Positions 3,624 to 56,930 of a stretch of DNA of 64,000 nt are shown here, piece after piece (positions within the stretch are counted from its first letter, which is position 1; each line of letters starts with the position of its first letter). The notes under the pieces were generated by a model. The model saw nothing but the letters and a program-made list of their open reading frames with translations, searched no databases and was not told the DNA's origin. Made by a program: the position numbers and the translations under genes. The stretch is from positions 594,286 through 658,285 of the forward strand of contig NIVC01000598.1 of NCBI GenBank assembly GCA_002269645.1. The letters are read 5' to 3'. The DNA is from Macrostomum lignano (Eukaryota).

Positions 3624-3721
3624 CGGACGGCAAAGCGAACGGTAGGGCGGACATGCACCTCGAGATGTCCGGTCCGGTTCCGATCGAGTACGTCGACGAC
3701 GATGGCGACGAGCGGTAAAGT
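3624..3721 (+). pseudogene. Orphan ~95-bp fragment of ABCG exon 5
   Basis: cggacggcaaagcgaacggt...gatggcgacgagcg matches ~14291-14381 with about 3 mismatches. It is followed by gtaaagt, which matches the exon ~22 nt further on. Confidence 0.9.
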
Positions 3722-5909: not shown

Positions 5910-8900
5910 TTAAACCTTCTTCATGTAGCGAAGCCACAGGTAGCCGGCCACACGGAAGAGGACGAGGAACAGCAGAAGGACGAGACAGTTGGCCCAGATT
6001 GGCAGCGGCTGGTCGGGCAAGTACTGGATGATCTCAGAGGACGGGAATGTGGTCTGGTTGTTCGCGTTCAGGTAGGTGCCGTTCAGGCAGCTGGGATAGG
6101 CGCTCCTCAGGGTGGTGGCGCACCTGCGGATGAGTAATAAAAAGCAGGACTATGTGTCTATTTTGAATTTGCGTTTTGCCTCAGTTCCTTGCTATTAGCA
6201 TCAGACCATCGAGAGTGAGACGAGGAACTGACTAGATTGTACTGCCGGTGGCTAAATTTAATGTTGTCTTGTCTAAATCGAAATCCGAAATTGTTTTCTA
6301 AAAATGGAATGACGAATCTGCATACTGAGATGTCTAAATTGAATATCGGTTTTGTTTAAATTGTCAGAAAAGGGGCTGCATTGCTGTTGCTATCAAATAA
6401 TTCTATTTTTATTAATTCAATTATAAATATTTTTAACATTAGAAATGGATTACCTCACATCCAGTAATCCTCGATAAAAATGTCAAAACGTTATAACATA
6501 GATTCTAGACTTGAACTTTATTGTTCCTTCCGGGCTTCCTGGCCACACATCTCTTCCAATCACTGAAGCAATTCAGAACACTTTCGGGACACTGTTATGC
6601 TCGAAGCATCCAAAACTACTGAACAAATACTAAAAAACAGAGGTAGGTTTTAGGACTGTACTTACAAGAAGTTGGACGAGCTTCGCATAGACAGCAGCAT
6701 GGTAAAGTGGTAGCAGTACCGGATGAACGACAGGTACTTGGCCCACACCAACCACACAGGTATAGCAGTTGTAAAGAAGCCACCTGTTGGACATTCAAAA
6801 TAAGATTCCAGTACAGTTACATACCAAAAATATACTGCAAAAGGAATAAAAACTATTCGTACTACTCACCAAGTAGAAGTGAGAACATCATAAACACGAA
6901 AGCAATAGTCAAATTGGCTTTCGGTATATCCGTCAGCAAACCAACAAATATTCCGATGCCCTGCAAAATGGTGAGGGATAGCTCGTTAGAGCTTGCTTTG
7001 TTCGCTTAATTTAAAACAGTGAGCCCAAAAGCCCAGACGCGACACAGAATATCCTAAAACGTTTCCCATTTCACATCAATGCAAGAATATTCAAATTCAA
7101 ACTTGTCTGCTTCATTTAGCACGCACCTGGCATGCCATGGCATTCACGAGAATTCCCAGCACGAATGGAACGTACTCGACCCCGGTTCCCAGACCGGCGA
7201 TCCAGTACACCAGAGTCAGCGTGATGAACGGCATCACAATGACCAGCGGCATCTCCGTGGCCATCTTGGCAACGTAGTAAGCGCCAATCTGGTACATGCC
7301 GGCGCGACGCTCGTGCTTCACGATCATGATGTCCTCGTGAACTGCAAACAGTTTCTCATCCATTTATTTAAAGAACTTTCACTAATTAAATGTACTTGTA
7401 GTAGTTGGGCTAAAAACCTCACTAGGACCCTGTGTAATTAAACTCACAAGACATGATGGCATCAAACAGGGGCGCAAAGCTAAGGTTCGTTGTCAGGAAA
7501 AAAATCTAAAATATTTTTTAGCGTAAGCACGGAATGATATTGCAGTAGCCTTAGATATTTATTTATAAGCATATCGTTTGTGATGAATCCAATCGAATTT
7601 AACTCACGCATCCCATAATGTCGCTGATGTGCTCCTCTGTGCGGGTAATCTGCCACCACAGAAGGCTGCAGATCAGACCCACAAACAGCGTTTGAATTAT
7701 TGGAAACACGGATAGGAAACGGCTGCGAGCCAGGTAGAATCCCCGAATGGTGAGCGCGTTGAGCTGACGACACCACTTTACCCGAGTCACCTCCGACAGC
7801 TCGCGCTCGTCGCCATCGTCGTCAACGTACTCGATCGGAACCGGACCGGACATCTCGAGGTGCGTGTCCGCCTTACCGTTCGCTTTGCCGTCCGCCTCCT
7901 CGTAGGCCGGGTTCACGTGACCGAGACTCACCGATGAGCCGTTGCCCTGCTTTTCGAGGTAACCATTGACTTCGTCCGCATCTTCTCCATCGCCTCCGGC
8001 GCCTTGGTCTAGCAGAGCTCGAGAGCTGTCGGCAGTGATGAGCGACTTGAGCTGTCCGAGGTCCGAGAATCTGGTGCCCTGCTCGATGATGTGGTGCTTG
8101 TTTTCGGACGAGCCCTTCACGATCTCCACTGTAGATGTGATGTAAACGTTGTGATTATTGTAACGGATTGCGCAAGCAAGATGCGCTAACTAAACAGTCT
8201 TCCATAACTACATTAATGTGCCTGCCTATCGTTATATGGTCACTCACGCATGAAGTCGGCGGGATTCCAGTGCTTGTGAAAGGGTACGTCGATGCTCTCG
8301 AAGTAATCGACCATCCCGCTGCGCTTTCCGCTGTACGAGATGTGACCGTCCGTCAGCAGCAGCAGGTCGTCGAACACGTGGAAAATCTGCGACGACGGCT
8401 GGTGGATGCTGGCGATGACGATCTTGTTCTCCTTGATCGACCAGCGGCGCAGCAGGTCGATCAGCGTCATGGCCAGGCTGGAGTCGAGACCGGACGTCGG
8501 CTCGTCTAGCAGCAGCACGTCCGGATTTCGGAGCAGCTCGCAGGCGATGTTGGCTCGCTTCTTCTCGCCTCCGGACAGGCCGGGCATCATGAAGTTCCCG
8601 ATGACTGCATGATTTCACAGTATTGAGACATGATGTCGCAGGAGTTTGTCAAATGTGTTCAATGTGCAATCAGTGTCTAGGCGGTGTTTTACGAGTCCCA
8701 TAAATCCAGCATCGTCGTTGCTAATAAACTTTCTTAATCCTGATAACATTTACTTCCAATCTAAATTTCAAGCCAAATTTGAATTGCATCTTGCGAAAGT
8801 GCAGGATACTCACTTGTTTCCATGCACTTTTCTAGCTCCAGTGATCTGATCACACCGTCGATGCGAGCTCTTCGTTCCTTTTCCGTCATTGAGTCGGGAA

Positions 8901-9754
8901 GTTTCACTCGTGCGGCGAACTGAAAGTGCGTTCGAGATCGTTAATAACGAATTTTGCACATGTTAGCTGCAGTTATTGTAGAGGACATTCTGTCCGAGAG
9001 TCTCACCTCAACGGTCTGTCTCAGTGTGAGAATTGGGAAGAACACGTCCATCTGAGTGACGTAGCCGAATGACTTTCGCATTCTGGGCGACACCGGCTTG
9101 CCGCCCACCGTGATGCTGCCCGACGTCAGGGGCATCCGTCCGGAGACCGTGTTCATGAAGGTCGTCTTTCCGCTGCCTGCCAGCATGATTTGAAATCGGG
9201 ATTGAACAATGCCTCATTCTCTAGGAATACGAGCTTCGAGTGTTGCAACTGCTTATCTACCTGAATGATATACATGTTATCTAGCTTTGTCCGTCAATGC
9301 AGTACTGGTACATATTGTACTTTTGTTTCTAAAATGGTTTGCAACCTTTTCGATTCTTTAGTCGCCTTTTGTGTCCACGCATTACACGAAGACAAATATG
9401 AGCAGACAAATTTGCACCACCAAGGGTACAAGTTAAAGCTAGAAATGCGTTATACTTCCTGTAGCCAAAATGAGATTGCGAGTAATTGCACCAGTGCCTC
9501 AACTAGCAGAGCACTGGTCAAGTAATGAGACTCAGAATTCGAGAGATATTATGCTCACCGCTGGGACCCATGACCGCCAGCAGACTTCCACTTTTGGCGA
9601 TGACGCTCACATCGTGCAGAATCTGCTTCTCTCCGGCGAACACGCAGAACCGATCTGCAATCAGAGTCAGTCGCTTTCTGCTCCCCTCGCCATTGGCATT
9701 GAGTCCTGGATGAGCTGTCACAGCCTGCTCAGCTTCCACTTCTTGAGATGCCAT
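5910..9754 (-). CDS. ABCG: ABCG-subfamily half ABC transporter, copy A (10 exons, 681 aa)
   Basis: Exons 9754-9559, 9176-9007, 8919-8814, 8604-8248, 8128-7608, 7506-7449, 7341-7127, 6960-6870, 6783-6666, 6123-5910. All introns are GT-AG with consistent phases; the total is 2046 nt. Walker A GPSGSGKT, signature LSGGEKKR, Walker B LLLDEPTSGLD, H-loop SIHQPS, and a C-terminal TMD (NBD-TMD order). The symbol is family-level only. Confidence 0.93.

Positions 9755-9773
<19 letters not shown>
7608..9773. repeat. Near-identical palindrome arm (partner 12412-14577)
   Basis: Paired coordinates sum to 22185 throughout, so there is no net indel over ~2166 bp. The ORF track shows identical mirrored peptides even in introns 1 and 3. 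Confidence 0.95.
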
Positions 9774-12430
<2,657 letters not shown>

Positions 12431-15400
12431 ATGGCATCTCAAGAAGTGGAAGCTGAGCAGGCTGTGACAGCTCATCCAGGACTCAATGCCAATGGCGAGG
12501 GGAGCAGAAAGCGACTGACTCTGATTGCAGATCGGTTCTGCGTGTTCGCCGGAGAGAAGCAGATTCTGCACGATGTGAGCGTCATCGCCAAAAGTGGAAG
12601 TCTGCTGGCGGTCATGGGTCCCAGCGGTGAGCATAATATCTCTCGAATTCTGAGTCTCATTACTTGACCAGTGCTCTGCTAGTTGAGGCACTGGTGCAAT
12701 TACTCGCAATCTCATTTTGGCTACAGGAAGTATAACGCATTTCTAGCTTTAACTTGTACCCTTGGTGGTGCAAATTTGTCTGCTCATATTTGTCTTCGTG
12801 TAATGCGTGGACACAAAAGGCGACTAAAGAATCGAAAAGGTTGCAAACCATTTTAGAAACAAAAGTACAATATGTACCAGTACTGCATTGACGGACAAAG
12901 CTAGATAACATGTATATCATTCAGGTAGATAAGCAGTTGCAACACTCGAAGCTCGTATTCCTAGAGAATGAGGCATTGTTCAATCCCGATTTCAAATCAT
13001 GCTGGCAGGCAGCGGAAAGACGACCTTCATGAACACGGTCTCCGGACGGATGCCCCTGACGTCGGGCAGCATCACGGTGGGCGGCAAGCCGGTGTCGCCC
13101 AGAATGCGAAAGTCATTCGGCTACGTCACTCAGATGGACGTGTTCTTCCCAATTCTCACACTGAGACAGACCGTTGAGGTGAGACTCTCGGACAGAATGT
13201 CCTCTACAATAACTGCAGCTAACATGTGCAAAATTCGTTATTAACGATCTCGAACGCACTTTCAGTTCGCCGCACGAGTGAAACTTCCCGACTCAATGAC
13301 GGAAAAGGAACGAAGAGCTCGCATCGACGGTGTGATCAGATCACTGGAGCTAGAAAAGTGCATGGAAACAAGTGAGTATCCTGCACTTTCGCAAGATGCA
13401 ATTCAAATTTGGCTTGAAATTTAGATTGGAAGTAAATGTTATCAGGATTAAGAAAGTTTATTAGCAACGACGATGCTGGATTTATGGGACTCGTAAAACA
13501 CCGCCTAGACACTGATTGCACATTGAACACATTTGACAAACTCCTGCGACATCATGTCTCAATACTGTGAAATCATGCAGTCATCGGGAACTTCATGATG
13601 CCCGGCCTGTCCGGAGGCGAGAAGAAGCGAGCCAACATCGCCTGCGAGCTGCTCCGAAATCCGGACGTGCTGCTGCTAGACGAGCCGACGTCCGGTCTCG
13701 ACTCCAGCCTGGCCATGACGCTGATCGACCTGCTGCGCCGCTGGTCGATCAAGGAGAACAAGATCGTCATCGCCAGCATCCACCAGCCGTCGTCACAGAT
13801 TTTCCACGTGTTCGACGACCTGCTGCTGCTGACGGACGGTCACATCTCGTACAGCGGAAAGCGCAGCGGGATGGTCGATTACTTCGAGAGCATCGACGTA
13901 CCCTTTCACAAGCACTGGAATCCCGCCGACTTCATGCGTGAGTGACCATATAACGATAGGCAGGCACATTAATGTAGTTATGGAAGACTGTTTAGTTAGC
14001 GCATTTTGTTTACGCCATCCATTACAATAATCATAACGTTTACATCATATCTACAGTGGAGATCGTGAAGGGCTCGTCCGAAAACAAGCACCACATCATC
14101 GAGCAGGGCGCCAGATTCTCGGACCTCGGACAGCTCAAGTCGCTCATCACTGCCGACAGCTCTCGAGCTCTGCTAGACCAAGGCGCCGGAGGCGATGGAG
14201 AAGATGCGGACGAAGTCAATGGTTACCTCGAAAAGCAGGGCAACGGCTCATCGGTGAGTCTCGGTCACGTGAACCCGGCCTACGAGGAGGCGGACGGCAA
14301 AGCGAACGGTAAGGCGGACACGCACCTCGAGATGTCCGGTCCGGTTCCGATCGAGTACGTTGACGACGATGGCGACGAGCGCGAGCTGTCGGAGGTGACT
14401 CGGGTAAAGTGGTGTCGTCAGCTCAACGCGCTCACCATTCGGGGATTCTACCTGGCTCGCAGCCGTTTCCTATCCGTGTTTCCAATAATTCAAACGCTGT
14501 TTGTGGGTCTGATCTGCAGCTTGCTGTGGTGGCAGATTACCCGCACAGAGGAGCACATCAGCGACATTATGGGATGCGTGAGTCCAAATCGAAATAATTG
14601 GTCCTTTGTATGCATGAGATACTTATAGGTTTTTTTTCAAAGATTCACTAAAGCTGCTGAAAGTTCATGACGGAATAGCTTGATTCTATTGTAGATTTTC
14701 TTCCTAACAGCGAATCTCAGTTTTTCGCCTCTGTTCGAAGCGATTATGTCTTGTGAGTTCCATAGCGCTGGTTACTTATGTAGTAATCTGCACTTCTCAT
14801 GATTAATAAACTTTCGATGTGAGTTTTATCTTACTAAACGCATGAGAAACCGCTTGCAGTTCACGAGGACATCATGATCGTGAAGCACGAGCGTCGCGCC
14901 GGCATGTACCAGATTGGCGCTTACTACGTTGCCAAGATGGCCACGGAGATGCCGCTGGTCATTGTGATGCCGTTCATCACGCTGACTCTGGTGTACTGGA
15001 TCGCCGGTCTGGGAACCGGGGTCGAGTACGTTCCATTCGTGCTGGGAATTCTCGTGAACAGCATTGCGTGCCAGGTAAACATGCATGCGTGTCGCAAAGT
15101 GCATCTTATGTGATTTTTTTGAAATTAATATATTCTTAATAATTTTTGGGACTTTACTGTAGCTCTCTTGAATTGAAAACTTACAATTGAGTGAGTCTAA
15201 GAGGCACATATGCTTTGAATAATTGTTTCAGGGCATCGGAATCTTTATCGGTCTGCTGACGGACATACCGAAGGCTAATATGACCATCGCTTTCGTTTTC
15301 ATGATGTTCTCATTTTTGCTAGGTGAGTAGAATGATGCCGTGACGGTTTTTCATCATAAAGAACTTCTTCTTTGCTCCTTATTGCGTTGCACTTTTTGCA

Positions 15401-16418
15401 TCAATATTTCGCGGATACTTTGCTGCCACGCATCCGATCTATTTTTCGAATTTGTAGTCTCGAAAATTTTTGAAGGGGGTTCAAAATTGCGAAAATCTGA
15501 TGTTTTGAGCGATATTTTAACCTGCCCGAAAAATTTTTTTGAATAGAATTGTGTAGCAAATAATTTTTTAATCTGTCTTCTTTAGGTGGCTTCTTCACAA
15601 CCGCCATCCCATCGTGGCTGGTTTGGGCCAAGTATCTGTCGTTCATCCGGTACTGCTACCACCTCGGCTTGCTGCTGTCTATGCTGAGTTCGCCCAACTT
15701 CTTGTAAGTTAAGCATTTGGCTACCTCTTGTTGCAGTTATTTTCAGTTTAGCATTTGGCTACCTCTTGTTGCAGTTATTTTCAGTTTAGCATTTGGCTAC
15801 CTCTTGTTGCAGTTATTTTCAGTTTAGCATTTGGCTACCTCTTGTTGCAGTTATTTTCAGTTTAGCATTTGGCTACCTCTTGTTGCAGTTATTTTCAGTT
15901 TAGCCTTTGGCTACCTCTTGTTGCAGTTATTTTCAGTTTAGCCTTTGGCTACCTCTTGTTGCAGTTATTTTCAGATTAGCATTTGGCTACCTCTTGTTGC
16001 AGTTATTTTCAGTTTAGCATTTGGCTACCTCTTGTTGCAGTTATTTTCAGTTTAGCATTTGGCTACCTCTTGTTGCAGTTATTTTTAGTTTTTAGAAAAT
16101 CAGATGATGAGGAGTAGCTTTTTCGGCACTTTCAGGACTTTTAGGGTATTTTACTTGAAAACTAGATTGCGGAGCTCAGAGAATTTCTGTCTACGAATTT
16201 ACAGGTGCGCCACAACCCTGAGGAGCGCCTACCCCAGCTGCCTGAACGGCACCTACCTGAACGCGAACAACCAGACCACATTCCCGTCCTCTGAGATCAT
16301 CCAGTACTTGCCCGACCAGCCGCTGCCAATCTGGGCCAACTGTCTCGTCCTTCTGCTGTTCCTCGTCCTCTTCCGTGTGGCCGGCTACCTGTGGCTTCGC
16401 TATATGAAGAAGGTTTAA
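12431..16418 (+). CDS. ABCG: ABCG-subfamily half ABC transporter, copy B (10 exons, 681 aa)
   Basis: Exons 12431-12626, 13009-13178, 13266-13371, 13581-13937, 14057-14577, 14695-14752, 14860-15074, 15232-15322, 15586-15703, 16205-16418. GT-AG introns, 2046 nt open frame, same motifs and exon lengths as copy A. The symbol is family-level only. Confidence 0.93.
15712..16090. repeat. 38-bp minisatellite (~10 copies) in ABCG copy B intron 9
   Basis: Unit AGCATTTGGCTACCTCTTGTTGCAGTTATTTTCAGTTT. Confidence 0.95.
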
Positions 16419-18689: not shown

Positions 18690-19627
18690 CTCCCTCTCTG
18701 TCCCTTCGTCTCTGTCCCGTTCGTCTCTGTCCCTTCGTCTCTGTCCCTTCGTCTCTGTCCCTTCGTCTCTGTCCCTTCGTCTCTGTCCCTTCGTCTCTGT
18801 CCCTTCGTCTCTGTCCCTTCGTCTCTGTCCCTTCGTCTCTGTCCCTTCGTCTCTGTCCCTTCGTCTCTGTCCCTTCGTCTCTGTCCCTTCGTCTCTGTCC
18901 CTTCGTCTCTGTCCCTTCGTCTCTGTCCCTTCGTCTCTGTCCCTTCGTCTCTGTCCCTTCGTCTCTGTCCCTTCGTCTCTGTCCCTTCGTCTCTGTCCCT
19001 TCGTCTCTGTCCCTTCGTCTCTGTCCCTTCGTCTCTGTCCCTTCGTCTCTGTCCCTTCGTCTCTGTCCCTTCGTCTCTGTCCCTTCGTCTCTGTCCCTTC
19101 GTCTCTGTCCCTTCGTCTCTGTCCCTTCGTCTCTGTCCCTTCGTCTCTGTCCCTTCGTCTCTGTCCCTTCGTCTCTGTCCCTTCGTCTCTGTCCCTTCGT
19201 CTCTGTCCCTTCGTCTCTGTCCCTTCGTCTCTGTCCCTTCGTCTCTGTCCCTTCGTCTCTGTCCCTTCGTCTCTGTCCCTTCGTCTCTGTCCCTTCGTCT
19301 CTGTCCCTTCGTCTCTGTCCCTTCGTCTCTGTCCCTTCGTCTCTGTCCCTTCGTCTCTGTCCCTTCGTCTCTGTCCCTTCGTCTCTGTCCCTTCGTCTCT
19401 GTCCCTTCGTCTCTGTCCCTTCGTCTCTGTCCCTTCGTCTCTGTCCCTTCGTCTCTGTCCCTTCGTCTCTGTCCCTTCGTCTCTGTCCCTTCGTCTCTGT
19501 CCCTTCGTCTCTGTCCCTTCGTCTCTGTCCCTTCGTCTCTGTCCCTTCGTCTCTGTCCCTTCGTCTCTGTCCCTTCGTCTCTGTCCCTTCGTCTCTGTCC
19601 CTTCGTCTCTGTCCCTTCGTCTCTGTC
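18690..19627. repeat. 14-bp minisatellite (GTCCCTTCGTCTCT)n, ~66 copies
   Basis: Read directly; it produces spurious 14-residue periodic ORFs. Confidence 0.97.
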
Positions 19628-20123: not shown

Positions 20124-21868
<1,745 letters not shown>

Positions 21869-24233: not shown

Positions 24234-25780
24234 TAGGGGTGTTCGGGATGGCATTTTTTCGGGGTTCGGGGTTAACCCCGATCCCGAACATCTTTCAGGA
24301 ATCCCGAACCCCGTCCCGAACCCTAATCCCGACTCCGAACCCCGATAACCCCGAAGTAAGCAATAGCATGAAATAAAAAGTGGTATTGACGGCTACTTAC
24401 GACTATTAGCCTGTTCAGACTTTCAGTTCAACTTAAAATTAATGTGAAATTAATTTAAGGCAGATTGCATTTCTTTTGTTTTCTTTTTCCATCGATTACG
24501 AATACGAAATACCAACTAACGGTTGTGTTCATTGTGCAACAATTTTGATGTGTTTGATGTGTGAAACATCATGTGCCTCTTTCTCTGCAGAGGTGGAAGC
24601 TATCTTATCAATCAATAATCAATCTCTCTTTTTCTTATTCTCGTTTACTTAGTCTTTGGTGGCATTGCCATTGATGCACGTTGACGCTAGTAAACACTAA
24701 AATCATCTGAATTCTCATGTCATCTAATCTAAATGATCAGACTACCAAGTGATAATAGAATAGAACGCGAGTCACTTTACAGTCTCTGGCTCAACGAATA
24801 TGGCATACAGCTAATCGAACTTGTCTCGCAAGAACATTAACTTGCTGAGCGATGAGCTGGAAAGGATGCAGCGTTCCTTGCGCTTTAGAAAACCGGCAGC
24901 ACTGAAGGCGCACTCTGATGGGACAGATGATGCTGGGGCAGTGAGGTGAAGCTTAGCGAGCTCTGCCAGCTCTGGAAGATTAGCGGAGTTCTGCTTCCAG
25001 AATTCGCTGACTGCTACCTGAAAATTCTGCTGCGCCAGACTCCTGTACAGAGAAAGCTGATCAGCTGCTCTGCGCCTCGCTTCCTTCTTCCTCGCGTCTC
25101 CTCTGGCGCCAGAGTTCGATGCACTCGCAGTCGCATTGCACTCGTGAGTGGTAATTCCAGATAATCTGCAGAACTGCAAAAACTTGCATCCAGAGCTCTC
25201 TTCAGTACCCGAAATGACATTATCGTGCATCTCCTGGGTAGCGGCCATTGTATTTGCGCTGCTGGCATCTTGCCCAGAAAGCTCCTGCTCAAGGCTCCAG
25301 ATGACCTCACTCTTGAGATGGTTTTGGATGTCCACCATGTCACCCAGGTTTAGATGAGGCGATGCGACGATGGTATTGTCTAGAAAAGCAGCGGTCTTGT
25401 AGAACAAGATGTTGAAGTCTTTGCACTCAAACGTGTACTTGTTCAGCTGCTCCATAAGACGCCTCCGAATGGATCGATCGACGCCGTCAACATCAGCAGA
25501 AAGAAATTGCCGCAGACCATAGAGGACGACATTCTAATTCATACGGATTTTTTCGTAGTTCTATGGGAATTCAGAAAATTTGCGAAACCCCGAAAACCCC
25601 GAAATCCCGGTCCAAAATCCCGTCTCGAACCCCGATCCCGAACATTCATCGGGACCCCGAACCCCATCCCGAACATTCATCGGGAACCCCGAACCCCATC
25701 CCGAACATTCATCGGGACCCCGAACCCCGACCCCTAATCCCGACCGCGAACCCCGACCTAACCCCGAACCCCGACCCCTA
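24234..25780 (-). mobile_element. Internally deleted hAT DNA transposon with perfect 8-bp TSD
   Basis: Termini TAGGGGT...ACCCCTA. TSD CTCCCGAG at 24226-24233 and 25781-25788. Subterminal CCCGAA repeat arrays at both ends. Confidence 0.92.
24811..25455 (-). pseudogene. hAT transposase C-terminal (dimerisation) portion, 214-aa ORF
   Basis: FWKQNSANLPELAELAKLHLTAPASSVPSECAFSAAG...LSKLMFL matches the hAT C-terminal dimerisation motif. The N-terminal and catalytic regions are not seen. Confidence 0.85.
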
Positions 25781-26690: not shown

Positions 26691-27254
<564 letters not shown>

Positions 27255-32109: not shown

Positions 32110-33205
32110 CACTTTTAATTCCTTTTCAGCTCTCCCCTTCCCCTTTCTCTCTATCCCTCTTCCCTCTCCCTTCCCTTACTCTCTGCCCCTCTCCCCTCTC
32201 CCTTCCCTTACTCTCTGCCCCTCTCCCCTCTCCCTTCCCTTTCTCTCTACCCCTCTCCCCTCTCCCTTCCCCTTACTCTCTGCCCCTCTCCCCTCTCCCT
32301 TCCCTTTCTCTCTGCCCCTCTCCCCTTATCCCTTCCCCTTTTCTCTCTGCCCCTCTCCCCTTATCCCTTCCCCTTTTCTCTCTACCCCTCTCCCCTTCTC
32401 CCTTCCCCTTTTCTCTCTGCCCCTCTCCCCTTCTCCCTTCCCCTTTTCTCTCTGCCCCTCTCCCCTTCTCCCTTCCCCTTTTCTCTCTGCCCCTCTCCCC
32501 TTATCCCTTCCCCTTTTCTCTCTACCCTCTCCCCTTCTCCCTTCCCCTTTTCTCTCTGCCCCTCTCCCCTTATCCCTTCCCCTTTTCTCTCTACCCCTCT
32601 CCCCTTCTCCCTTCCCCTTTTCTCTCTACCCCTCTCCCCTCTCCCTTCCCCTTTCTCGCTACCCCTCTTCCCTCTTCCTTCCTCTTTCTCTCTGCCCCTC
32701 TCCCCTTCTCCCTTCCCCTTTCTCGCTACCCCTCTCCCCTTCTCCCTTCCCCTTTTCTCTCTGCCCCTCTCCCCTTCTCCCTTCCCCTTTTCTCTCTGCC
32801 CCTCTCCCCTTATCCCTTCCCCTTTTCTCTCTACCCCTCTCCCCTTATCCCTTCCCCTTTTCTCTCTACCCCTCTCCCCTTCTCCCTTCCCCTTTTCTCT
32901 CTGCCCCTCTCCCCTTATCCCTTCCCCTTTTCTCTCTACCCCTCTCCCCTTCTCCCTTCCCCTTTTCTCTCTGCTCCTCTCCCCTTCTCCCTTCCCCTTT
33001 TCTCTCTGCCCTCTCCCCTTCTCCCTTCCCCTTTTCTCTCTGCCCTCTCCCCTTATCCCTTCCCCTTTTCTCTCTACCCCTCTCCCCTCTCCCTTCCCCT
33101 TTCTCGCTACCCCTCTTCCCTCTCCCTTCCCCTTTCTCTCTGCCCCTCTCCCTCTTCCTTCCTCTTTCTCGCTACCCCTCTCCTCTTTTCCTCCCCTTTC
33201 TCTCT
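32110..33205. repeat. ~35-bp polypyrimidine minisatellite
   Basis: Unit approximately CCCCTCTCCCCTTCTCCCTTCCCCTTTTCTCTCTG. Confidence 0.93.
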
Positions 33206-33900
33206 ACCCGCCAAACCCTCTCCCTACTCTTTCCTCATTCTCTTTCTTTCCATATACTAACTTTTGGCGATAGTATTTCTCTCTATTTAGCGCCAGAACT
33301 TGGGTGTCACTGAACTGATATTGCTTTATGAAAAATCGAGCCATAAAAAGCCAATTATTATAATGAGTAACGATACAGTTGACTCCATTTTGACCCCGCT
33401 GTCTTGCCAACTTCAATCAATTCGAAAGCTTTCATCCCATATTTTTCTATCAGTTGTCAGTCGCACCGATTGATATATATATAAGCGATATTTGGGCTTA
33501 TATCTGCAATTAACTATCTGGCGAGCACAGCCCGGCACCCTGATGGGGGGTCTCTCCACCGCCTTCCCGAGCCATTTCCTCTTGGCAGTCGCTCTGCCCA
33601 GGCTGCGTTGAGATTGACTGAGTGAAATAACTCTGCCCCCATACTGCTCGTCAGCCACCCCCAGCCCGGGCCCGGAAGTTTGTCAGGCCAGCAATGCCAC
33701 GGCCGTGAGGCGCGTGGAAAACTGTGGAAAACTTTATCCCCACCTCTTCGGCACTGCGAACTCCCCATCCGAAAAAATCCCCTCGAAAAACTCTGGTTCT
33801 CTCATTCGTTGGCTTTTTAGCATTGTAGAAATAGTTTTTGTTGGGGATCAACTTTTTCAATAAGTTTTCCTAATCTCAAACCACCAAGACACAAAGAGTT

Positions 33901-34644: not shown

Positions 34645-36228
34645 GGTCCCTCTCCCTCCCTCTCCCTCCCTCCGCTCCCTCTCCCTCCCTCGGCTCCCTC
34701 TCCCTCCTTCGGCTCCCTCTCCCTCCTTCAGCTCCCTCTCCCTCCCTCGGCTCCCTCTCCCTCCCTCGGCTCCCTCTCCCTCCTTCGGCTCCCTCTCCCT
34801 CCTTCAGCTCCCTCTCCCTCCCTCGGCTCCCTCTCCCTCCCTCGGCTCCCTCTCCCTCCCTCTCCCTCCCTCTCCCTCCCTCCGCTCCCTCTCCCTCCCT
34901 CGGCTCCCTCTCCCTCCTTCGGCTCCCTCTCCCTCCTTCAGCTCCCTCTCCCTCCTTCGGCTCCCTCTCCCTCCCTCGGCTCCCTCTCCCTCCCTCTCCC
35001 TCCCTCTCCCTCCCTCAGCTCCCTCTCCCTCCCTCTCCCTCCCTCTCCCTCCCTCTCCCTCCCTCCGCTCCCTCTCCCTCCTTCGGCTCCCTCTCCCTCC
35101 TTCGGCTCCCTCTCCCTCCCTCTCCCTCCCTCCGCTCCCTCCCCCTCCTTCGGCTCCCTCTCCCTCCCTCCGCTCCTCTCCCTCCTTCGGCTCCCTCTCC
35201 CTCCCTCTCCCTCCCTCAGCTCCCTCTCCCTCCTTCGGCTCCCTCTCCCTCCCTCAGCTCCCTCTCCCTCCTCAGCTCCCTTTCCCTCCCTCGGCTCCCT
35301 CTCCCTCCCTCAGCTCCCTCTCCCTCCCTCGGCTCCCTCTCCCTCCCTCGGCTCCCTCTCCCTCCCTCGGCTCCCTCTCCCTCCCTCGGCTCCCTCTCCC
35401 TCCTTCGGCTCCCTCTCCCTCCCTCAGCTCCCTCTCCCTCCCTCAGCTCCCTCTCCCTCCTTCGGCTCCCTCTCCCTCCCTCTCCCTCCCTCCGCTCCCT
35501 CTCCCTCCTTCGGCTCCCTCTCCCTCCCTCGGCTCCCTCTCCCTCCCTCCGCTCCCTCTCCCTCCTTCGGCTCCCTCTCCCTCCCTCGGCTCCCTCTCCC
35601 TCCTTCGGCTCCCTCTCCCTCCCTCTCCCTCCTTCGGCTCCCTCTCCCTCCCTCTCCCTCCCTCTCCCTCCCTCCGCTCCCTCTCCCTCCTTCGGCTCCC
35701 TCTCCCTCCCTCAGCTCCCTCTCCCTCCTTCGGCTCCCTCTCCCTCCCTCGGCTCCCTCTCTCTCCCTCAGCTCCCTCTCCCTCCCTCTCCCTCCCTCTC
35801 CCTCCCTCCGCTCCCTCTCCCTCCCTCGGCTCCCTCTCCCTCCTTCGGCTCCCTCTCCCTCCCTCGGCTCCCTCTCTCTCCCTCAGCTCCCTCTCCCTCC
35901 CTCTCCCCCCCTCTCCCTCCCTCCGCTCCCTCTCCCTCTCCCCCCCTCTCCCTCCTTCGGCTCCCTCTCCCTCCCTCTCCCTCCCTCCGCTCCCTCTCCC
36001 TCCTTCGGCTCCCTCTCCCTCCCTCCGCTCCCTCTCCCTCCTTCGGCTCCCTCTCCCTCCTTCGGCTCCCTCTCCCTCCTTCGGCTCCCTCTCCCTCCCT
36101 CTCCCTCCCTCCGCTCCCTCTCCCTCCTTCGGCTCCCTCTCCCTCCTTCGGCTCCCTCTCCCTCCCTCAGCTCCCTCTCCCTCCCTCGGCTCCCTCTCCC
36201 TCCCTCGGCTCCCTCTCCCTCCCTCCTT
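34645..36228. repeat. Complex 19-bp-based polypyrimidine minisatellite (CTCCCTCTCCCTCCTTCGG variants)
   Basis: Read directly; it explains the spurious Pro/Ser/Leu ORFs. Confidence 0.93.
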
Positions 36229-38990: not shown

Positions 38991-40202
38991 CTATACCTGA
39001 TCGTCTGCCTCCCAGTGAACTGTCGTAGCGACTGCCACGGACGGAGAAGCGGAGGCGGTGTCGGACGAGGCGGAAGCGAAAACCGACCCAATCTCTGCTG
39101 TCGCAGACCGGCTCCGCCGCCAGAGCTCCTCGCAGATCTCCGCAGCCGCCGACGGCCCGGCGTTGCTGTCAACGAGAGCCAGTAGGAGCACGCCGTCCGG
39201 CCCGATCCGATCGGTAAAGGTGACAATTCCCACTCCGCTGCCGCCAGCGGTGCAGCCACGCATCCGCAGCAGTCTGGTGACATATCTGCGCCGAGCAGAC
39301 TTGGGCAGAAGCCGCCAGCACCAGATGATGAGGCTGCGGCCGGTCAGACAGCCGAGACCGAAAAGCCAGAACCAGAGAAGAGCGTAGACCTTCTCGTTGA
39401 GTCGGTTGATTTGCAGAACGCACTGCACGGTGTGCCGCTGCTCGTTGCCAAGCACCCGGATGAGCAGGTCGCAGTAAGTCACGCGGGGAAAATAGCCGGA
39501 CTCTTCCCAGTCGCGGCCGAGCGTCAAATTCACGGCCAACGAGAAGCCGTAGGCAACCGTCCGAGTGCCGGCTGTCAAGTAGGAGTTAATGATGAAGAAC
39601 TGGGAGACTGTGGTACCGATGTAGAGCAATTTGGTAGCCAGGTAGGCCCTGCACAGCTGGCTGTTGGCGGGGTTCAGCTGCGCCCAGCAGCGCGATCCTC
39701 CAACTGACCTGGCTTCGGCGGCGTCCAGCGCTTCGCCGAGATGCCCGGCCACTGACGCCACAGTCTGGCGTCGGGCGCGCCTGCTGCGCAGGTCTTGACA
39801 GTCGGTGGCCAGCTGCAGCGCCCGTGGAAGTCGCAGACCGCGCCTATCCAGACAGTTGGACCAGAACAGGTTGGGCAGCTGGAACATGACGGCCTGGAGC
39901 AGCAGCAGGAAGGCCACCCACTGGTAGTAGGGCAGCTCCTCCGCCTTGCGCTCGGGGAGGCCCTTTGGGATCGGCCGGTCGCGCGGCAGATGGTAGGTGT
40001 TCAGCGCCCAGCAAGCGCTCTCCGTGTACTCCAGGTGAGCCTCAGTGAACTCCTTGGGTACCCAGCAGCTGATCGGGCTGCCAAGGTACTGCCGTTTGCA
40101 GGTGATCACCACGCAGCACAGCAGGAGTAGAAAGGTAAAAAAGTGATTGAGCCTGTCGTTGGACTCATCGTTGACTTCCTTCGAGAAGATTCCAAAGCCC
40201 AT
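38991..40202 (-). CDS. inx: Innexin (gap-junction/hemichannel protein), single coding exon, 403 aa
   Basis: DRLNH, PISCWVPKEF, ACW, YYQWV, FPRVTYCD, HTVQCVL.IN..NEK, WFW and GPDGVLLL motifs. Four TM segments and four extracellular Cys. The symbol is family-level only. Confidence 0.95.
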   Translation of the reverse strand: MGFGIFSKEVNDESNDRLNHFFTFLLLLCCVVITCKRQYLGSPISCWVPKEFTEAHLEYTESACWALNTYHLPRDRPIPKGLPERKAEELPYYQWVAFLLLLQAVMFQLPNLFWSNCLDRRGLRLPRALQLATDCQDLRSRRARRQTVASVAGHLGEALDAAEARSVGGSRCWAQLNPANSQLCRAYLATKLLYIGTTVSQFFIINSYLTAGTRTVAYGFSLAVNLTLGRDWEESGYFPRVTYCDLLIRVLGNEQRHTVQCVLQINRLNEKVYALLWFWLFGLGCLTGRSLIIWCWRLLPKSARRRYVTRLLRMRGCTAGGSGVGIVTFTDRIGPDGVLLLALVDSNAGPSAAAEICEELWRRSRSATAEIGSVFASASSDTASASPSVAVATTVHWEADDQV

Positions 40203-41003
40203 GGTTAATTGCTTCTTGCCTTCCTTACGATCTAGCTCAATGCAGAGGTTCAGAAGTCGCCCGCAAAGCCGTTGCCCTCCAGCCCGCAGACAAAGTTATT
40301 GATATTAAGCAAGGGGGTCGTGTGTGCACGCAAGTTTTTTCATTTTTTCTGTCCCTTGTGCCAAAATTCAAGAATGGAGTCAAGCGTACATTCAAACTGA
40401 AAGGCCCGCTGCTTGGAATGGTGTCTACTATTAGAGGGACTAACTGCATAATGGGGGTTTCGGATATGAGTGCTTGAAGAGGAAAGGAATGAGCAGGTGC
40501 TTTTTTGCCTCTCGGGCGAACTTATTTTCAATTGCGTATTACAGCCCAAAGGCACTACTTTAGTATCCTACTTTCAGTAGAGTAAAGCGTAAATAAAGAA
40601 AAAAATTACAGTTTGTTTCCACTAATGCTAAAGAACTGATTTTTCGGTTCCAACAGAATTTCTGTTCACACTTCGGACTTGATTACGTTCGCGCTAATTC
40701 TTCCAGTCCAATCGATTTTCTTAGCGAATTCAGAGCAACCCTGATTGAAGGGCGCCGGCCGTGATGGAGGGCGGACTTTTGCATCCCCTCCCGCATCCCC
40801 TCCTTGATGTCCTCTCTGCTGGGCAGCTTCTTACGCGCTTAACACTTGGCCGTTCCTTGATTCAATTCCCGGCCAGCAAAGTCTAATTAGAGTACTCTAT
40901 GCGGAGCGCCAGTAGAGACAATGAAGGGACAATGAATTAACTTTTTACGAGTTAGCAAGTAGCATAAAGTCTGTCTGAAGGAACATCGTGGCTGACAACA
41001 ACT

Positions 41004-43967: not shown

Positions 43968-44032
43968 GGACAAGCCTAAATTACCACTGACGTGGCAAGC
44001 AATAGAATCCTACTGTGAAACGAAGGACCAAG

Positions 44033-47000
44033 ATGGACAGTGACGACGCCAATGAACAACAGCAGGAAGCCCAAGACGATGCCGGCGCGCTGCGTTTAGA
44101 GAAGCTGCGCTTCGAGAAATCCCGAAAAAAAGCAGCGTTCACTCGTTGCAAAAACAAGCTTTCTTGGCTGCTAAAGACGCGCGCCTCTGATGACGAAGTG
44201 CAAGCTGCCTGCGACGCTCTATCCGACCTGCAGGACCTGGTCAGCGCCATCCAAAAAGAACTGCATCAAGGCTACGCCGACGCCAAGGACAACGAGAGGC
44301 GACAGCGCCTACTAGAAGAGATGGAGGAGACTGAGCGCGACTACCAAGCTGCCATTCAGCGCGTCGAAAGTTCCAGAAACCGGGGATTGCAGCGCGCCCA
44401 AGAAGCCCCTCCTGCCGCGAGTTCAAGCGGTGAGAACGCTGCGGGTGACCAAGAAGAAGCAGCTGGTGAGTTAGACAAACTTTCTGGCAGTGCTGCGTCC
44501 AGCAAAGGATCCAACCCGAAGGAGCTTTCAAAGGATTTGTGGAAGATGCTGAAGCGTGTTGAAATCCCAACGTTTAGTGGAGAAAAGCAGAAGTATGAAA
44601 ACTGGAAGGCAGCCTTTGTTGCGTGCATCGACAGCGCCCCTGCAACACCAGAATTCAAGTTGCTGCAGCTTAGGCAGTACCTCAGCGGTGAAGCTTTGAA
44701 GGTTATAGAACATCTAGGACACTCTGCTGCGGCATATGAAGCTGCAAAAGAGAGATTAGAGAGAGAATTTGGTGGACAGCGTAGGCAACTTGCTCTGCAC
44801 TTGGAAGAGCTGGACAGCTTCCCGATCGTGCGAAATGGAAACGCCAAGGATCTGAAAAGCTTTGCTAATCTACTGGATGTGGCTGTCGTTAACCTTGAGG
44901 ATGCGGGTAAAGAGGCAGAGCTTCAAGATGGGATGTTGTATGTGAGGCTGCAGAAAAAGTTGCCTGAGCAGATGGTTGCCAGCTACCGGAGGTGGATCTT
45001 TGAGCAGCGGAAGCCGGAGAGTGTTAGAAATCTGAGAATTTGGGTGCTGCAAGAAGCAGAGTTTCAGACTGAAGCGTCAGAGATTGTGCAGGGCGTTGCC
45101 ACCATGCAGCAGGAGCGTCAAAAGCGAGAGCAGCGACCAAAGACTTTCGTTACTACGGACAGTGACAAGAAGGTACAGCGAAAGATTTGCATTGTTTGTC
45201 AAGGTGATCACGAGCTGTGGTCCTGCAGTGAGTTCAAGGAGCTTCCGGTGGAAAAACGCTGGGACGCGGCGCAGAGCTCGAAGTGTTGTTTCCGGTGCTT
45301 GGGCCAAGGACATCTTGGCAGCCAATGTCGGCGTGGTCGTCGGTGCGGCATCAGCAGCTGCACAAAGTTCCATCATCGCCTGCTTCATGCAGAAAAAGTG
45401 TTGGCCAAGTCTGGTGAAGCGAAGCAGACTGCATCCAAGGACGCTAAATCCGCTTCCAGTTCAGGAAAGACTGGACCGGTGACGCTTCTGTCGGCTGGTG
45501 AAACGGCAATCTCGCTACGAACGGTACCTGTAGTCCTACGGAACGGGTCCCGGAAGCTGAAGGTGAATGCCTTGCTCGACGATGCCAGTACCAGGAGCTA
45601 CGTCAACATCGGGATAGCAGAAGCGCTTGGAGTGCATGGAGCGCTCGAAAAGGTGAAAGTCGGAGTCATCAATGGCCAAACAGAGACCTTCATGACAGCC
45701 CCAGTCTGCTTTAGCTTGGAAAGTCTGGATGGTCAGACCAGCTCAATGATCGTCGCCTTCACCGCTGATCACGTGACTGGGTCCCTCAAAGGCGTCGACT
45801 GGCACGAAGAAGCGCAGCAGTGGCCTCATCTGAGAAATGTGCCGTTTCCGAAGCTGTGTGAGCCTGCAGTAGTGGACTTGCTGATTGGTGCTGATCACCC
45901 GGATCTTCACGTGTCTCTCAAAGAAATCGTCGGACAGCCGCTGGAGCCAAAGGCGCGCCTGACTCCCCTGGGTTGGACGTGCATCGGTCGCACAGAGCAG
46001 GACAATTCTGAGATGCAGAACGCCCATTTTGCTGCCACTTTCTTCAGCTGCGATTCCGAATCTGGTCAGGTGGCTAAGATCCTGCGGCAGTTTTGGGAGA
46101 TCGAGAACGTCTCAGAAGGTGCCAATCGAAGTCCGCTGACCGCCGATGAGGAGAGAGCCGTCCAGCAAGCCAAGTCGTCGCTAAAGTACACGAAGGGCCG
46201 TTACCAGATCGGGATTCCATGGAAAAAGGATCGGCTGGCTCCAGCAGGCACTTTCTCAATGGCCTTGAAGCGACTAAAGAACACCGAACAGCGGCTGATT
46301 AAGGATATGAACGTCTGCAAGCAGTATCAGGAGATCCTTGAAAAGTATGAACAGCAAGGTTATATCCGAAAAGTGTCGCAAGCTGAGACTGAAGGCCGCT
46401 GTTTCCTGCCGCACTTCCCAGTGCTGCGGCCAGACAAGGCTACGACAAAAGTGCGAATAGTCTTTGATGCATCGGCTGCCAGATTGAACGACCAGATCCG
46501 CCAGGGCCCCAAACTGCAGAGGGATTTGGTTGACGTGCTGCTTCGGTTCCGCCGACACCCGATTGCGATCGCATGCGACGTAGCGGAAATGTATCTCCAG
46601 ATCGAGATGGACCCGAAGGACAGGCCGCTGCACAGTTTCCTTTGGCGGGACGCCGATCCTTCAAAGCAGCCGGATGTCTACGAGTTCAACAGAGTGGTGT
46701 TCGGCGTCACCAGCTCTCCGTTCTTGGCACAGTTCGTTACCCGCTGCCATGCTGAAAAGTCAAAAGGTGAGCTTCCAGAGGCGGCCGAGACAGTACTGCA
46801 CTCTACCTATATGGATGACAGCCTGGACTCTGCGCCCACCGAGGCAGCCGCCTGCAGGCTGTACGATCAACTCAGTGAGCTCTGGAGGCGCGCCGGCATG
46901 CACGCGCGCAAGTGGGTCTCGAACTCGAGAGCTGTGCTCGATAGAATCCCACCTGAAGACCGTGCAGCAGAAGTTACCTTGGACAGCAAAGAACTACCAA

Positions 47001-47698
47001 GCACCAAGACACTGGGTGTCACGTGGCAGAGTGAGCAGGACGAATTTACCTTTAAAGATGAAAACGAGTCGTGTCAGGTGACCACAAAAAGAGGTCTGCT
47101 GAAGAAGCTAGCGAGCGTCTTCGATCCACTTGGACTGATCTCCCCGTTTGTCGTGCAGGCGAAAATTCTGATGCAGGAGCTTTGGCAGTCAATCTGGTCA
47201 ATTCTGAGGGAGACGGACGTCACCGATGAGGAGCTGCTAAGCGCGTTTGCTGGAGCAGAGGCACTTCTGAATTCAAGGCCGCTGACGTACCAGACGGCGC
47301 ATCCGAGTGATGATGTGCCGCTGACGCCGAATCACTTCCTTATCGGGCAAGTCGGCGGGAAGTTTGCACCGGAGGTCGACGCTGCCATCGCCCGCAGTCC
47401 TTCAAGAAGATGGCGTCACGTCCAGCAGCTGGTGTCGCAGATCTGGCGCCGGTGGTTGCGCGAGTGGCTGCCGGGACTCGCACCGCGGAGCAAGTGGCGC
47501 CTCGAGCTGCCTGACCTACAACCTGGAGACGTGGCGCTGCTGGTGAGCCCGGACTCGCCTCGGGGTCACTGGCCGCTGGCTCGCGTGCTGGAGGTCATGC
47601 GCGGTTCGGACGGTCACGTGAGAGTCGCCTCAATCAGAGTCGGTGATCGCACAATGACGAGACCAATAACAAAGTTGTGTCCAATATCTGCAGGTTAG
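44033..47698 (+). mobile_element. Bel/Pao LTR retrotransposon gag-pol ORF (1221 aa from first ATG) with in-frame loss of most of RNase H and the integrase core
   Basis: Gag (EIPTFSG...KLLQLRQYLSGEA), Zn knuckles CIVCQGDHELWSC and CFRCLGQGHLGSQC, protease LLDDAS, RT (FDASA, RVVFG, YMDD) and the RNase H start FDPLG...MQELW. These are followed directly by the integrase C-terminal region (LNSRPL, LTPNHFL, W..EWL, WPLARV). Confidence 0.93.
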
Positions 47699-48940: not shown

Positions 48941-49807
<867 letters not shown>

Positions 49808-55800: not shown

Positions 55801-56930
55801 ATGGCTATCTTATGGCTGGTTTAGGATTCATCCACGTATGAGTGCCTGAAAACTCTCTGATTAATGACGGGTCACACCTACTTCTCATCCCATGGTAACA
55901 CGGTGCTGCAGAAAATTTTGCTACATAAAATTTTATTAAAATCACCTTTCTTCGCTTTAAAAACCAATTGCAGTTGTCAAACATAATGGAGGTGGCCTGT
56001 GACGTGGAGATGATCAAGGATCCTCTGAGCCGGCAGACCAGTGTGCGCTATGTTGCCAAGCACATCGAGGATTCGCTCGGCTCGCATCGCGAGTACCGCT
56101 CAGGCTGTGCAACCAAACTCAGGCAGTGCGTAGCCAAAAATTGCTGCTTTTTCTGGTTCGGCAAGCGCTACGGAAACTTTCTAGTTTGCCTCTATCTAAT
56201 CTGCAAGGCCTGCTACATCTGCAATGTCATCGGACAGTTTTTCCTTATGAACAAGTACCTGGGCACCAACTACACTTTCTACGGACTGGAGCTGCTGCGA
56301 GATCTCGCGGAGGGCCGACAGTGGGAGGAGAGCGGCAATTTTCCCCGCATCACCCTCTGCGATTTCTACGTGCGCCGGGTGGGTGCCAACAATCACAGGC
56401 ACACTGTGCAGTGCGTCCTGCCCATCAACATGTTCAACGAGAAGATCTACATCTTCTTGTGGTTCTGGATGATCCTAGTGTCAGTGGTCAGCATTAGCAG
56501 CTTCATGTTCTGGATTTACAAGTCAGTATTTCGCACTAATCGGTCTCACTTTGTGCGAAAGTTTCTCAAGCTGCGCAACATTCTGGAACCGGGTGACAAG
56601 AAGAAAAGCTTCCAGTTCGTCGACGAGTACCTGCGCCCGGATGGCGTGTTCATACTGCGGCTGATTGCACAGAACTCCGGCGAACTGGTCGCCAGCGAGG
56701 TCACTGAGGCCCTCTGGCTCATGTACAAGGGCCGCTGCATGCTGTCCATCGGCCTACCCAACGATCTCAAGGAGCCGCTGCCGCCGTCCGCTCCGCAAGT
56801 CGGGGATCGGGGACCGGGCTCCGGCCGCGGCGCTGCGGCGGCCTCAGCGGCCAAGCGCCGCCTGCCTAACACGCACCCGCACGCTCAGCCGCTGAACTCG
56901 ATCGATGACGACCCGGGCGAGTTTGTCTGA
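52845..56930 (+). CDS. inx: Innexin, two coding exons (52845-53252, 55974-56930), ~454 aa
   Basis: DDDFADRISH, PIACWVPTEF, YYQWVP, FPRITLCDF, HTVQCVLPINMFNEKIYIFLWFW and YLRPDGVFILRLI. Phase-0 GT-AG intron (CAG|GTAGGC ... TTGCAG|TTG). The symbol is family-level only. Confidence 0.95.
53994..54849. mobile_element. Tc1/mariner-type MITE-like element in the innexin intron (~200-bp TIRs, TA TSD)
   Basis: 53994-54190 is the reverse complement of ~54655-54849. TA at 53992-53993 and 54850-54851. The internal plus-strand peptide RDRNRLLDAHENGQD weakly resembles an IS630/Tc1 N-terminal HTH start. Confidence 0.85.

Follow-up and report, generated by a model that had tools for sequence, protein, structure and literature searches.

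Probable ectopic gene conversion in an old cluster of ABCG half-transporter genes of Macrostomum lignano, with a near-identical ATPase half and diverged short transmembrane exons in a head-to-head pair

Here we describe a pair of ABCG half-transporter genes that stand head to head in the flatworm Macrostomum lignano. The genes lie in a stretch of 64,000 nucleotides (assembly GCA_002269645.1, contig NIVC01000598.1, hereafter C598, positions 594,286 to 658,285 of the forward strand) that we call the window, and whose coordinates are used below unless a contig is named. Gene A occupies the minus strand (5910..9754; PAA80093.1, BOX15_Mlig029567g2) and gene B the plus strand (12431..16418; PAA80092.1, BOX15_Mlig008305g2), with their ATG codons 2676 bp apart, and each encodes a protein of 681 amino acids (aa). 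The spliced models of both genes were built by hand and are the same, letter for letter, as the deposited proteins, both genes being already annotated in Mlig_3_7. The ten exons of gene A (9754-9559, 9176-9007, 8919-8814, 8604-8248, 8128-7608, 7505-7448, 7341-7127, 6960-6870, 6783-6666 and 6123-5910) and those of gene B (12431-12626, 13009-13178, 13266-13371, 13581-13937, 14057-14577, 14695-14752, 14860-15074, 15232-15322, 15586-15703 and 16205-16418) have the same lengths in the two genes (196, 170, 106, 357, 521, 58, 215, 91, 118 and 214 nt), and all introns are of the GT-AG type. The coding sequences differ at 59 nucleotides, which are distributed over exons 1 to 10 as 0, 0, 0, 1, 3, 12, 5, 16, 19 and 3. 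At the protein level there are 15 differences (aa 295, 456, 461, 465, 537, 538, 547, 558, 569, 581, 598-600, 605 and 608), 14 of which fall in the transmembrane domain (TMD), the nucleotide-binding domains (NBDs) being identical over aa 1-294. The original prediction, made from the letters of this stretch alone, had claimed two intact 681-aa ABCG genes with equal exon lengths and 15 amino acid differences, 14 of them in the TMD; the models and the deposited proteins agree with it, and the example strings that it quoted were all found.

Both proteins show the reverse NBD-TMD order, with the Pfam domains ABC_tran (PF00005) at 46-195, PF19055 at 225-287 and ABC2_membrane (PF01061) at 398-597. The ATPase motifs are intact (GPSGSGKT at 63-70, Q107, LSGGEKKR at 167-174, LLLDEPTSGLD at 188-198 and H225) and their columns are invariant across 43 homologs. 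A monomer model predicted by AlphaFold2 from the alignment of these 43 homologs (predicted local distance difference test score, pLDDT, 83.5) has helices at 395-414, 417-433, 441-482, 488-518, 523-550, 554-571, 581-589, 591-605 and 653-678, and presents the ABCG fold, with a connecting helix and six transmembrane (TM) helices, TM5 being broken into segments a, b and c. Foldseek placed this model close to AtABCG25 (8i3d, TM-score 0.90) and ABCG2 (8bht, 0.89), and in a sequence search of solved structures the best relatives were likewise AtABCG25 (E = 1.9e-85) and human ABCG2. The nearest proteins from outside Macrostomum, at 36-41% identity, are invertebrate ABCGs labelled 'ABCG 14/21/22-like' or E23.

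A repeat search of the window found three pairs of inverted repeats joining the two genes: 7593-9781 with 12404-14592 (2189 nt, 99%), 7125-7382 with 14819-15076 (258 nt, 94%) and 5910-6126 with 16202-16418 (217 nt, 99%). The first pair forms the inner arms of a palindrome, on the minus strand for A and on the plus strand for B, which run from the 5' untranslated region (UTR) to exon 5 with introns 1 to 4 included. Their near-identical core (7602-9773 in A, 12412-14583 in B; 2172 bp) starts 19 bp ahead of the ATG, ends 6 bp beyond exon 5 and holds 13 substitutions and no indel; introns 1 to 3 are identical between A and B, and intron 4 contributes seven substitutions, which are all those of introns 1 to 4. 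The second pair is an identity island at exon 7 (plus strand on the B side), where A equals B over 14854-15058 and the final 15 or so nucleotides of the exon are diverged, and the third is an island at exon 10 (plus strand on the B side). A sliding-window global alignment of both gene regions gave between 93 and 100 matches per 100 nt, free of gaps, in the inner arm, and between 15 and 76 matches with many indels in introns 5 to 9, which are unalignable, and outside the genes; beyond the stop codons and upstream of position -19 the similarity of A and B is at the level of chance.

The exons that lie between these islands are the ones that differ. Exon 6 of B (14695..14752, plus strand, 58 nt; partner 7448-7505) encodes the cavity-lining part of TM2 and differs from that of A at 12 nt and three amino acids (456, 461, 465), exon 8 (15232..15322, plus strand, 91 nt; partner 6870-6960) encodes the end of TM4 and TM5a and differs at 16 nt and three amino acids (547, 558, 569), and exon 9 (15586..15703, plus strand, 118 nt; partner 6666-6783) encodes TM5b and TM5c, the re-entry helices, and differs at 19 nt and six amino acids (581, 598-600, 605, 608). 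The alignment and the counts per exon hence reproduce what had been noticed at the outset, namely some 2.17 kb of near-identity without net indel, divergence of exon 6, the end of exon 7, exons 8 and 9, introns 5 to 9 and the flanks, and a return to near-identity in most of exon 7 and in exon 10.

Synonymous (dS) and nonsynonymous (dN) divergence separate the two kinds of block sharply. Between A and B, exon 6, aa 536-541, exon 8 and exon 9 taken together gave dS = 0.96, dN = 0.084 and ω = 0.087, while exons 1-5, 7 and 10 gave dS = 0.012, an 80-fold contrast in synonymous differences (Fisher p = 6e-30). Because values so far apart are found inside one gene pair, the duplication must be old and the identity secondary. 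Protein constraint was considered as the source of the identity and rejected: introns 1 to 4 are near-identical and the synonymous sites differ 80-fold between the block types, so that with introns in the tracts near-identical and synonymous sites behaving like introns, constraint on the protein cannot account for the pattern. A Sawyer-type permutation test of the longest concordant run was significant for A-B and for the corresponding pair of a second locus copy described below (P <= 1e-4 in both). A donor paralog at another genomic site was also rejected as the source of the diverged exons, since a search of the 764-Mb, 5269-contig assembly with protein B returned TMD matches of at most 38% identity beyond C598 and that second contig.

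The second copy of the locus lies on a contig that we call C1607, whose reverse complement follows C598 collinearly for 50 kb or more, with 95-99% identity. The worms of the DV1 line are inbred, and between their three isolated subgenomes single-nucleotide polymorphisms (SNPs) amount to 1.4-2.4% (PMC10733133); for this reason C1607 is most likely another subgenome copy of the locus. Its gene copies, named Ah, Bh and Ch after their counterparts A, B and a third paralog C, are intact and make, together with A, B and C, six intact open reading frames with canonical splice sites. Between the contigs, exons 1-5, 7 and 10 have dS values of 0.012-0.017 (A-Ah and B-Bh). Site patterns were taken from a four-way alignment of A, B, Ah and Bh. 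Over B 12412-13990, six sites (five SNPs and one 1-bp indel) unite A with B and Ah with Bh, one site is a singleton and none is paralog-specific; the paralog-specific pattern begins at 14034 and continues outward, with 102 such sites in 14584-14818. Conversion must have acted after the two locus copies split, because without it each new mutation would occupy one arm only. In the distance matrices, copies from the same contig fall together for exons 1-3 and copies of the same paralog for the diverged exons, which is the grouping that had been foreseen for converted and diverged exons, with C1607 in the place of a second species; the homolog search contained no ortholog between 100% and 48% identity. 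The tracts are not alike in the two contigs. In exon 7, A equals B in C598, and Ah and Bh show four private synonymous differences; in exon 10, three old paralog-specific sites are common to both contigs; and the intron 4 variants of B (14005-14048) are those of C, Ch being a mosaic in the same stretch. These differing tract ends and details show several exchange events.

Between the inner arms lies a spacer of 2622 bp (9782..12403, unstranded) made of the two diverged upstream regions, which includes an (AGAT)146 microsatellite (11138-11720) whose length differs between C598 and C1607 and a dispersed repeat of about 85 bp (about 10472-10557). The spacer matches C1607 on the plus strand and the genes on both sides of it match on the minus strand; these opposite matches mean that the spacer is inverted between the locus copies. 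Seventeen variable sites that adjoin the arm inside the spacer, up to 12411, show the corresponding crossed pattern in which A equals Bh and B equals Ah. Such an inversion is as expected from a crossover inside the arms, and is a classic by-product of exchange between palindrome arms. As a result of it, the upstream region of A in C598 adjoins Bh in C1607. Among the deposited locus names, Mlig029567 is common to A (g2) and Bh (g1), and Mlig008305 to B (g2) and Ah (g1); this pairing tracks the swapped upstream regions and not the TMD type, which is consistent with the inversion without being proof of it. A further difference between the contigs concerns a 38-bp tandem repeat in intron 9 of B (15707..16091, plus strand, 10 copies), which has no counterpart in A and is shorter in the C1607 copy of B.

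The exchange extends beyond the two arms. Paralog C, an intact ABCG gene of 684 aa (C598:588287-592478, window -5999 to -1808, minus strand), stands in tandem with A on the same strand, and its counterpart Ch (C1607:149-158 kb) is an intact gene of 681 aa whose intron 8 carries a GC-rich (0.58) insertion of 5176 bp, the counterpart in C598 being 657 bp; apart from indels, this insertion of 5 kb and the lack of a further paralog, D, distinguish C1607 from C598. D (C598:583954-585518, window -10332 to -8768, minus strand) is a truncated ABCG gene that retains only exon 1 and exons 7-10, with CGG in place of CAG at the acceptor of exon 10. In the diverged blocks, dS is about 0.9 for both A-C and B-C, and A, B and C form a near-trichotomy that is much older than the split of C598 and C1607. 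Comparison of C with A or B over the remaining exons gave dS = 0.61 in exons 1-3, 0.06 in exons 4-5, 0.40-0.48 in exon 7 and 0.06-0.08 in exon 10, and B shares with C, at 98% identity, a contiguous tract of 1 kb (13578-14560 in B) that takes in intron 4. Exon 7 homogenisation is confined to A and B (aa 471-535: dS 0 for A-B, 0.40 for A-C). Homogenisation of C with A or B was judged by these dS values per exon; the Sawyer-type run test for C against A or B gave P of about 0.18, but it conditions on polymorphic sites, which are nearly absent where the copies are alike. Exons 4-5 and 10 are thus homogenised among A, B and C, and D shares in the exon 10 island, where it has kept about 97% identity to the other copies. 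This island is near-identical across A, B, C and D, and in each of the seven copies its limits coincide exactly with the splice acceptor on one side and the stop codon on the other. The islands also differ in age, the A-B dS being 0.06 in exon 10 and 0 in the inner arm. The arm-to-arm conversion that had been proposed consequently stands between A and B, but it is not solely arm-to-arm, C and D also exchanging exons 4-5 and 10. Between C and A, in both C598 and C1607, there is in addition a 90-nt fragment of exon 5 (window 3626-3715, plus strand; aa 356-385, 93% identical). The same interval in the window holds a second small inverted repeat (707-1096 with 2228-2617; 390 nt, 98%, with a spacer of 1131 nt), which could represent transposon ends or another small palindrome.

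Taking all these results together, we consider it probable that an old cluster of ABCG paralogs, with C and A in tandem, B inverted with respect to A, and the truncated D, has been exchanging sequence by ectopic gene conversion. The results show that the inner 2.17 kb of the A/B palindrome, from the 5' UTR to exon 5 with the introns included, has been homogenised since the two locus copies separated, and that a crossover within the arms has flipped the spacer in one of them. Farther out, homogenisation is seen in long exons only: A and B share it in exon 7, and all three of A, B and C in exons 4-5 and 10. The short exons 6, 8 and 9 have stood at dS of about 1 since before the locus-copy split. 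Recombination may fail to start or to be resolved in these short exons, each being a small island of homology flanked by introns that cannot be aligned, and/or conversions erasing cavity differences may have been selected against. All copies but D are intact and under purifying selection. The idea from which this work started, that of an old inverted duplication whose 5' (NBD) half is held identical by conversion, is supported by the dS contrast, the identity of the introns, the concerted sites and the flipped spacer.

Two other accounts of the identity deserve consideration. If one copy had received its 5' 2.2 kb from the other in one recent event, this would explain that the main tract is an uninterrupted block, which ends sharply near exon 1 and again near exon 5. 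We nevertheless regard such a one-off event as very unlikely, as the arms are identical within each of the diverged locus copies and yet six sites differ between these copies, which means that each lineage carrying derived states underwent one event or more once the copies had split. It also leaves aside that the tract ends and patchy sites differ by contig (with private exon 7 differences in C1607 only, and intron 4 of B equal to that of C), that the spacer inversion is a further exchange event and that the islands are of different ages. Alternatively, arms that are truly different could have been made identical by read correction or consensus, the orientation of the spacer in one of the contigs being then a mis-join. 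The assembly was produced with Canu from noisy PacBio continuous long reads (CLR) of a genome whose three subgenomes are nearly identical, and chimeric scaffolds account for 36% of the assembly length (PMC10733133, PMC5730564); the arms are, besides, identical over 1.6 kb in both contigs, all of which would agree with an artefact. Against it, the six differences between contigs survive inside the tract of identical arms, where blind homogenisation should have erased them, and 13 arm-specific substitutions are kept farther out. Typical reads exceed in length the arm (2.2 kb) and even the core as a whole (7 kb), and are anchored in unique flanking sequence. A fused gene model of the ML2 assembly (A0A1I8GE42) runs through antisense-B, then A, then C in the same order, and no consensus step would make sharp islands bounded by exons. 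An origin of the pattern in assembly or polishing is therefore, in our estimation, extremely unlikely.

Several observations nonetheless weigh against ectopic conversion as we have set it out, or against parts of it. The support against consensus or polishing effects on near-identical arms is indirect, coming from two contigs and from the gene order in an ML2 model, and since one and the same body of PacBio data underlies both Mlig_3_7 and ML2 (PMC5730564), ML2 represents a second assembler and no independent data set. C1607 may be an allele instead of a subgenome copy. Exons 1 (196 nt) and 7 (215 nt) are not homogenised with C though they are as long as exon 10, so that any rule of exon length is a loose one, and exon 9 has a high GC content at third codon positions (GC3, 0.74-0.87) though it is unconverted. 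Finally, the amino acid differences could be neutral, as none of the 14 variable TMD positions is constant in the family at large, and the diverged exons carry no signal of positive selection (ω = 0.087).

Whether exons 6, 8 and 9 escape for mechanical or for selective reasons is a separate matter, and both accounts fit the data. The original prediction opposed an identical NBD to TM segments that escape; this holds for exons 6, 8 and 9 and the end of exon 7, but TM1 (exon 5), TM3-TM4 (exon 7) and TM6 (exon 10) have been homogenised too. The escaping exons are the three shortest (58, 91 and 118 nt), each placed between unalignable introns, and across the ten exons length is negatively correlated with dS to C (Spearman -0.85, p = 0.0016, n = 10), so the escape could be a matter of exon length alone. 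The homogenised exons 2, 4, 5, 7 and 10 have GC3 values of 0.72-0.90, compared with 0.43-0.69 for exons 1, 3, 6 and 8, an excess that GC-biased conversion predicts. D, moreover, can hardly be under selection and yet its exon 10 is homogenised, which points to a mechanical process.

The selective account holds that the tracts do reach exons 6, 8 and 9 but that converted haplotypes are removed because the transporters need different cavities, as under subfunctionalisation. In its favour, the cavity and the outer gate are formed by TM2, TM5a and TM5b-c, which are encoded by just these three exons. Moreover, A and B are both intact, and their differences are kept in both locus copies. Alignment with HMMER further places three of the variable residues on positions that contact ligands in relatives, where mutation changes transport. 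Residue 456 (T in A, A in B) aligns with ABCG2 T435, a selector residue whose change to alanine abolishes mitoxantrone efflux (PMC11957596), and with AtABCG25 I445, whose change to alanine severely impairs the efflux of abscisic acid (ABA) (PMC10581904); residue 461 (A in A, S in B) aligns with the cavity residue ABCG2 S440; and residue 569 (L/F) aligns with AtABCG25 V559, an ABA-contact residue (PMC10581904), and adjoins the Leu-Leu plug L570/L571. The TMD differences are hence not solely at lipid-facing positions, the finding that would have told against differing specificity. On the other side, the synonymous sites and flanking introns have diverged as well, which selection on a few residues does not demand, the low ω denotes no excess of replacements, divergence follows exon length with respect to C also, and the truncated D keeps its homogenised exon 10. 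We regard selection as the explanation of the escape as possible but doubtful.

The residues that line the cavity suggest what the two copies might do. Among the ten ligand-contact residues common to all ABCG2 substrates (list from PMC11957596), eight are identical in each copy according to the HMMER alignment: F453, N457, F460, T559, I560, V563 and M566, plus T456 in A or S461 in B. They belong to the cavity motif FFLT(T/A)NLSF(A/S)PL at 452-463 and to its partner stretch at 559-571. In ABCG2 the central cavity is marked by the F439 clamp, the selectors T435 and N436, and T542, I543, V546 and M549 of TM5a. The residues kept by the flatworm proteins include the T-N pair, with T456 in A and N457 in both copies, which has been called unique to human ABCG2 among the transporters compared (PMC11957596); at the N position, Y or H prevails in the other members of this invertebrate ABCG clade. 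An ABCG2-like xenobiotic pocket is thereby hinted at, although the overall identity to ABCG2 is only about 26%. We infer that the animal makes two transporters (three with C) with one ATPase domain and different channel-lining residues in TM2 and TM5a; and because ABCG half-transporters act as dimers, mixed A/B dimers, which may have a different specificity, would be plausible. A bolder proposal would see in the locus a modular specificity system, in which one ATPase module kept by conversion is combined with two (with C, three) old cavity variants acting as homodimers and heterodimers of differing substrate range, and in which the flip of the spacer swaps the pairing of promoter and variant so that subgenome copies express different combinations. 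We hold this to be unlikely.

Within 10 kb the locus brings together many signatures of ectopic recombination, including identical arms and introns, concerted substitutions, an inverted spacer, islands bounded by exons, an excess of GC3 and a dependence on exon length. The second copy with its concerted sites and flipped spacer, the exchange network of three paralogs and the dependence on exon length make it a good case for teaching and testing, and its host is a model animal capable of transgenesis whose genome carries several isolated copies of the locus. Two matters could be addressed there: the halting of conversion at short exons, by mechanics or by selection, and the possible retuning of an ABCG exporter when one or two residues of its cavity are exchanged, namely those equivalent to ABCG2 T435 and S440 and to AtABCG25 I445 and V559. 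For annotation and expression work in M. lignano, reads from exons 1-5, 7 and 10 are unassignable to a copy, and exons 6, 8 and 9 alone discriminate A, B and C.

The rest of the window contains features of other kinds. The microsatellite of the spacer is one of three long (AGAT)n tracts of 140-217 units (11138-11720, 26697-27254 and 48941-49806), and C/T-rich minisatellites with periods of 14, 35, 19 and 18 occupy 18695-19627, 32135-33209, 34656-36225 and 62516-63996; the extreme GC and AT skew in the composition profile is due to these long C/T-rich minisatellites. Two innexin genes (PF00876) are found at 38991-40295 on the minus strand (E = 5e-78) and at 55929-56930 on the plus strand (E = 3e-61). 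Remains of mobile elements include a BEL/Pao-type gag-pol open frame of 1230 aa (44006-47698, plus strand), an RNase H fragment (20837-21745, minus strand) and a fragment of a hAT dimerisation domain (24811-25533, minus strand).

Literature searches on the locus names and on ABC transporters with inverted duplicates and conversion returned no publication on this locus, and the ABCG family and a neopolyploid flatworm host are, as far as the literature was searched, new for the pattern of mosaic conversion. As regards the proteins, A and B resemble human ABCG5/ABCG8 in being two ABCG half-transporter genes placed head to head over a short shared upstream region. ABCG5 and ABCG8, however, differ strongly along their whole length and act as an obligate heterodimer in which one ATP site is degenerate, an asymmetry that A and B do not have; their NBDs are identical and fully canonical, and homodimers are therefore expected to work. 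In the PDB, the similarity of A and B is higher to AtABCG25 and ABCG2 than to ABCG5/G8. With the former two they share the reverse NBD-TMD topology and the fold, and by alignment they have eight of the ten ABCG2 contact residues and the Leu-Leu plug, but they are only 25-28% identical to them overall and belong by sequence to the invertebrate 'ABCG14/21/22-like / E23-like' group.

Conversion between arms with inversion of the spacer is known from the ampliconic palindromes of the primate Y and X chromosomes and from the FLNA-EMD repeats of human Xq28, whose arms measure from 9 kb to 1.45 Mb. The A/B locus is like them in having arms at least 99% identical around a unique spacer, lineage-specific states present on both arms and both orientations of the spacer. 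It differs from them in that its arms are of 2.2 kb in a duplicated unit of roughly 4 kb, in an autosomal location and a hermaphrodite host; in that the arm covers only a part of the gene, so that each gene is chimeric, homogenised in its 5' part and anciently diverged in its 3' part; and in that a third, tandem paralog joins the exchange. Mosaic conversion by exons that spares those defining function is known in turn from the primate red and green opsins, RHD/RHCE and the inverted hsp70 pairs of Drosophila. There, as in A and B, most of the gene is homogenised, a few segments with the specificity residues remain diverged, and identity may end at exon borders; the escaping segments of A and B, unlike those, are also the shortest exons, which makes a mechanical cause as good as selection. 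The A/B locus is, in this company, a very clean case of a known process and not a new mechanism.

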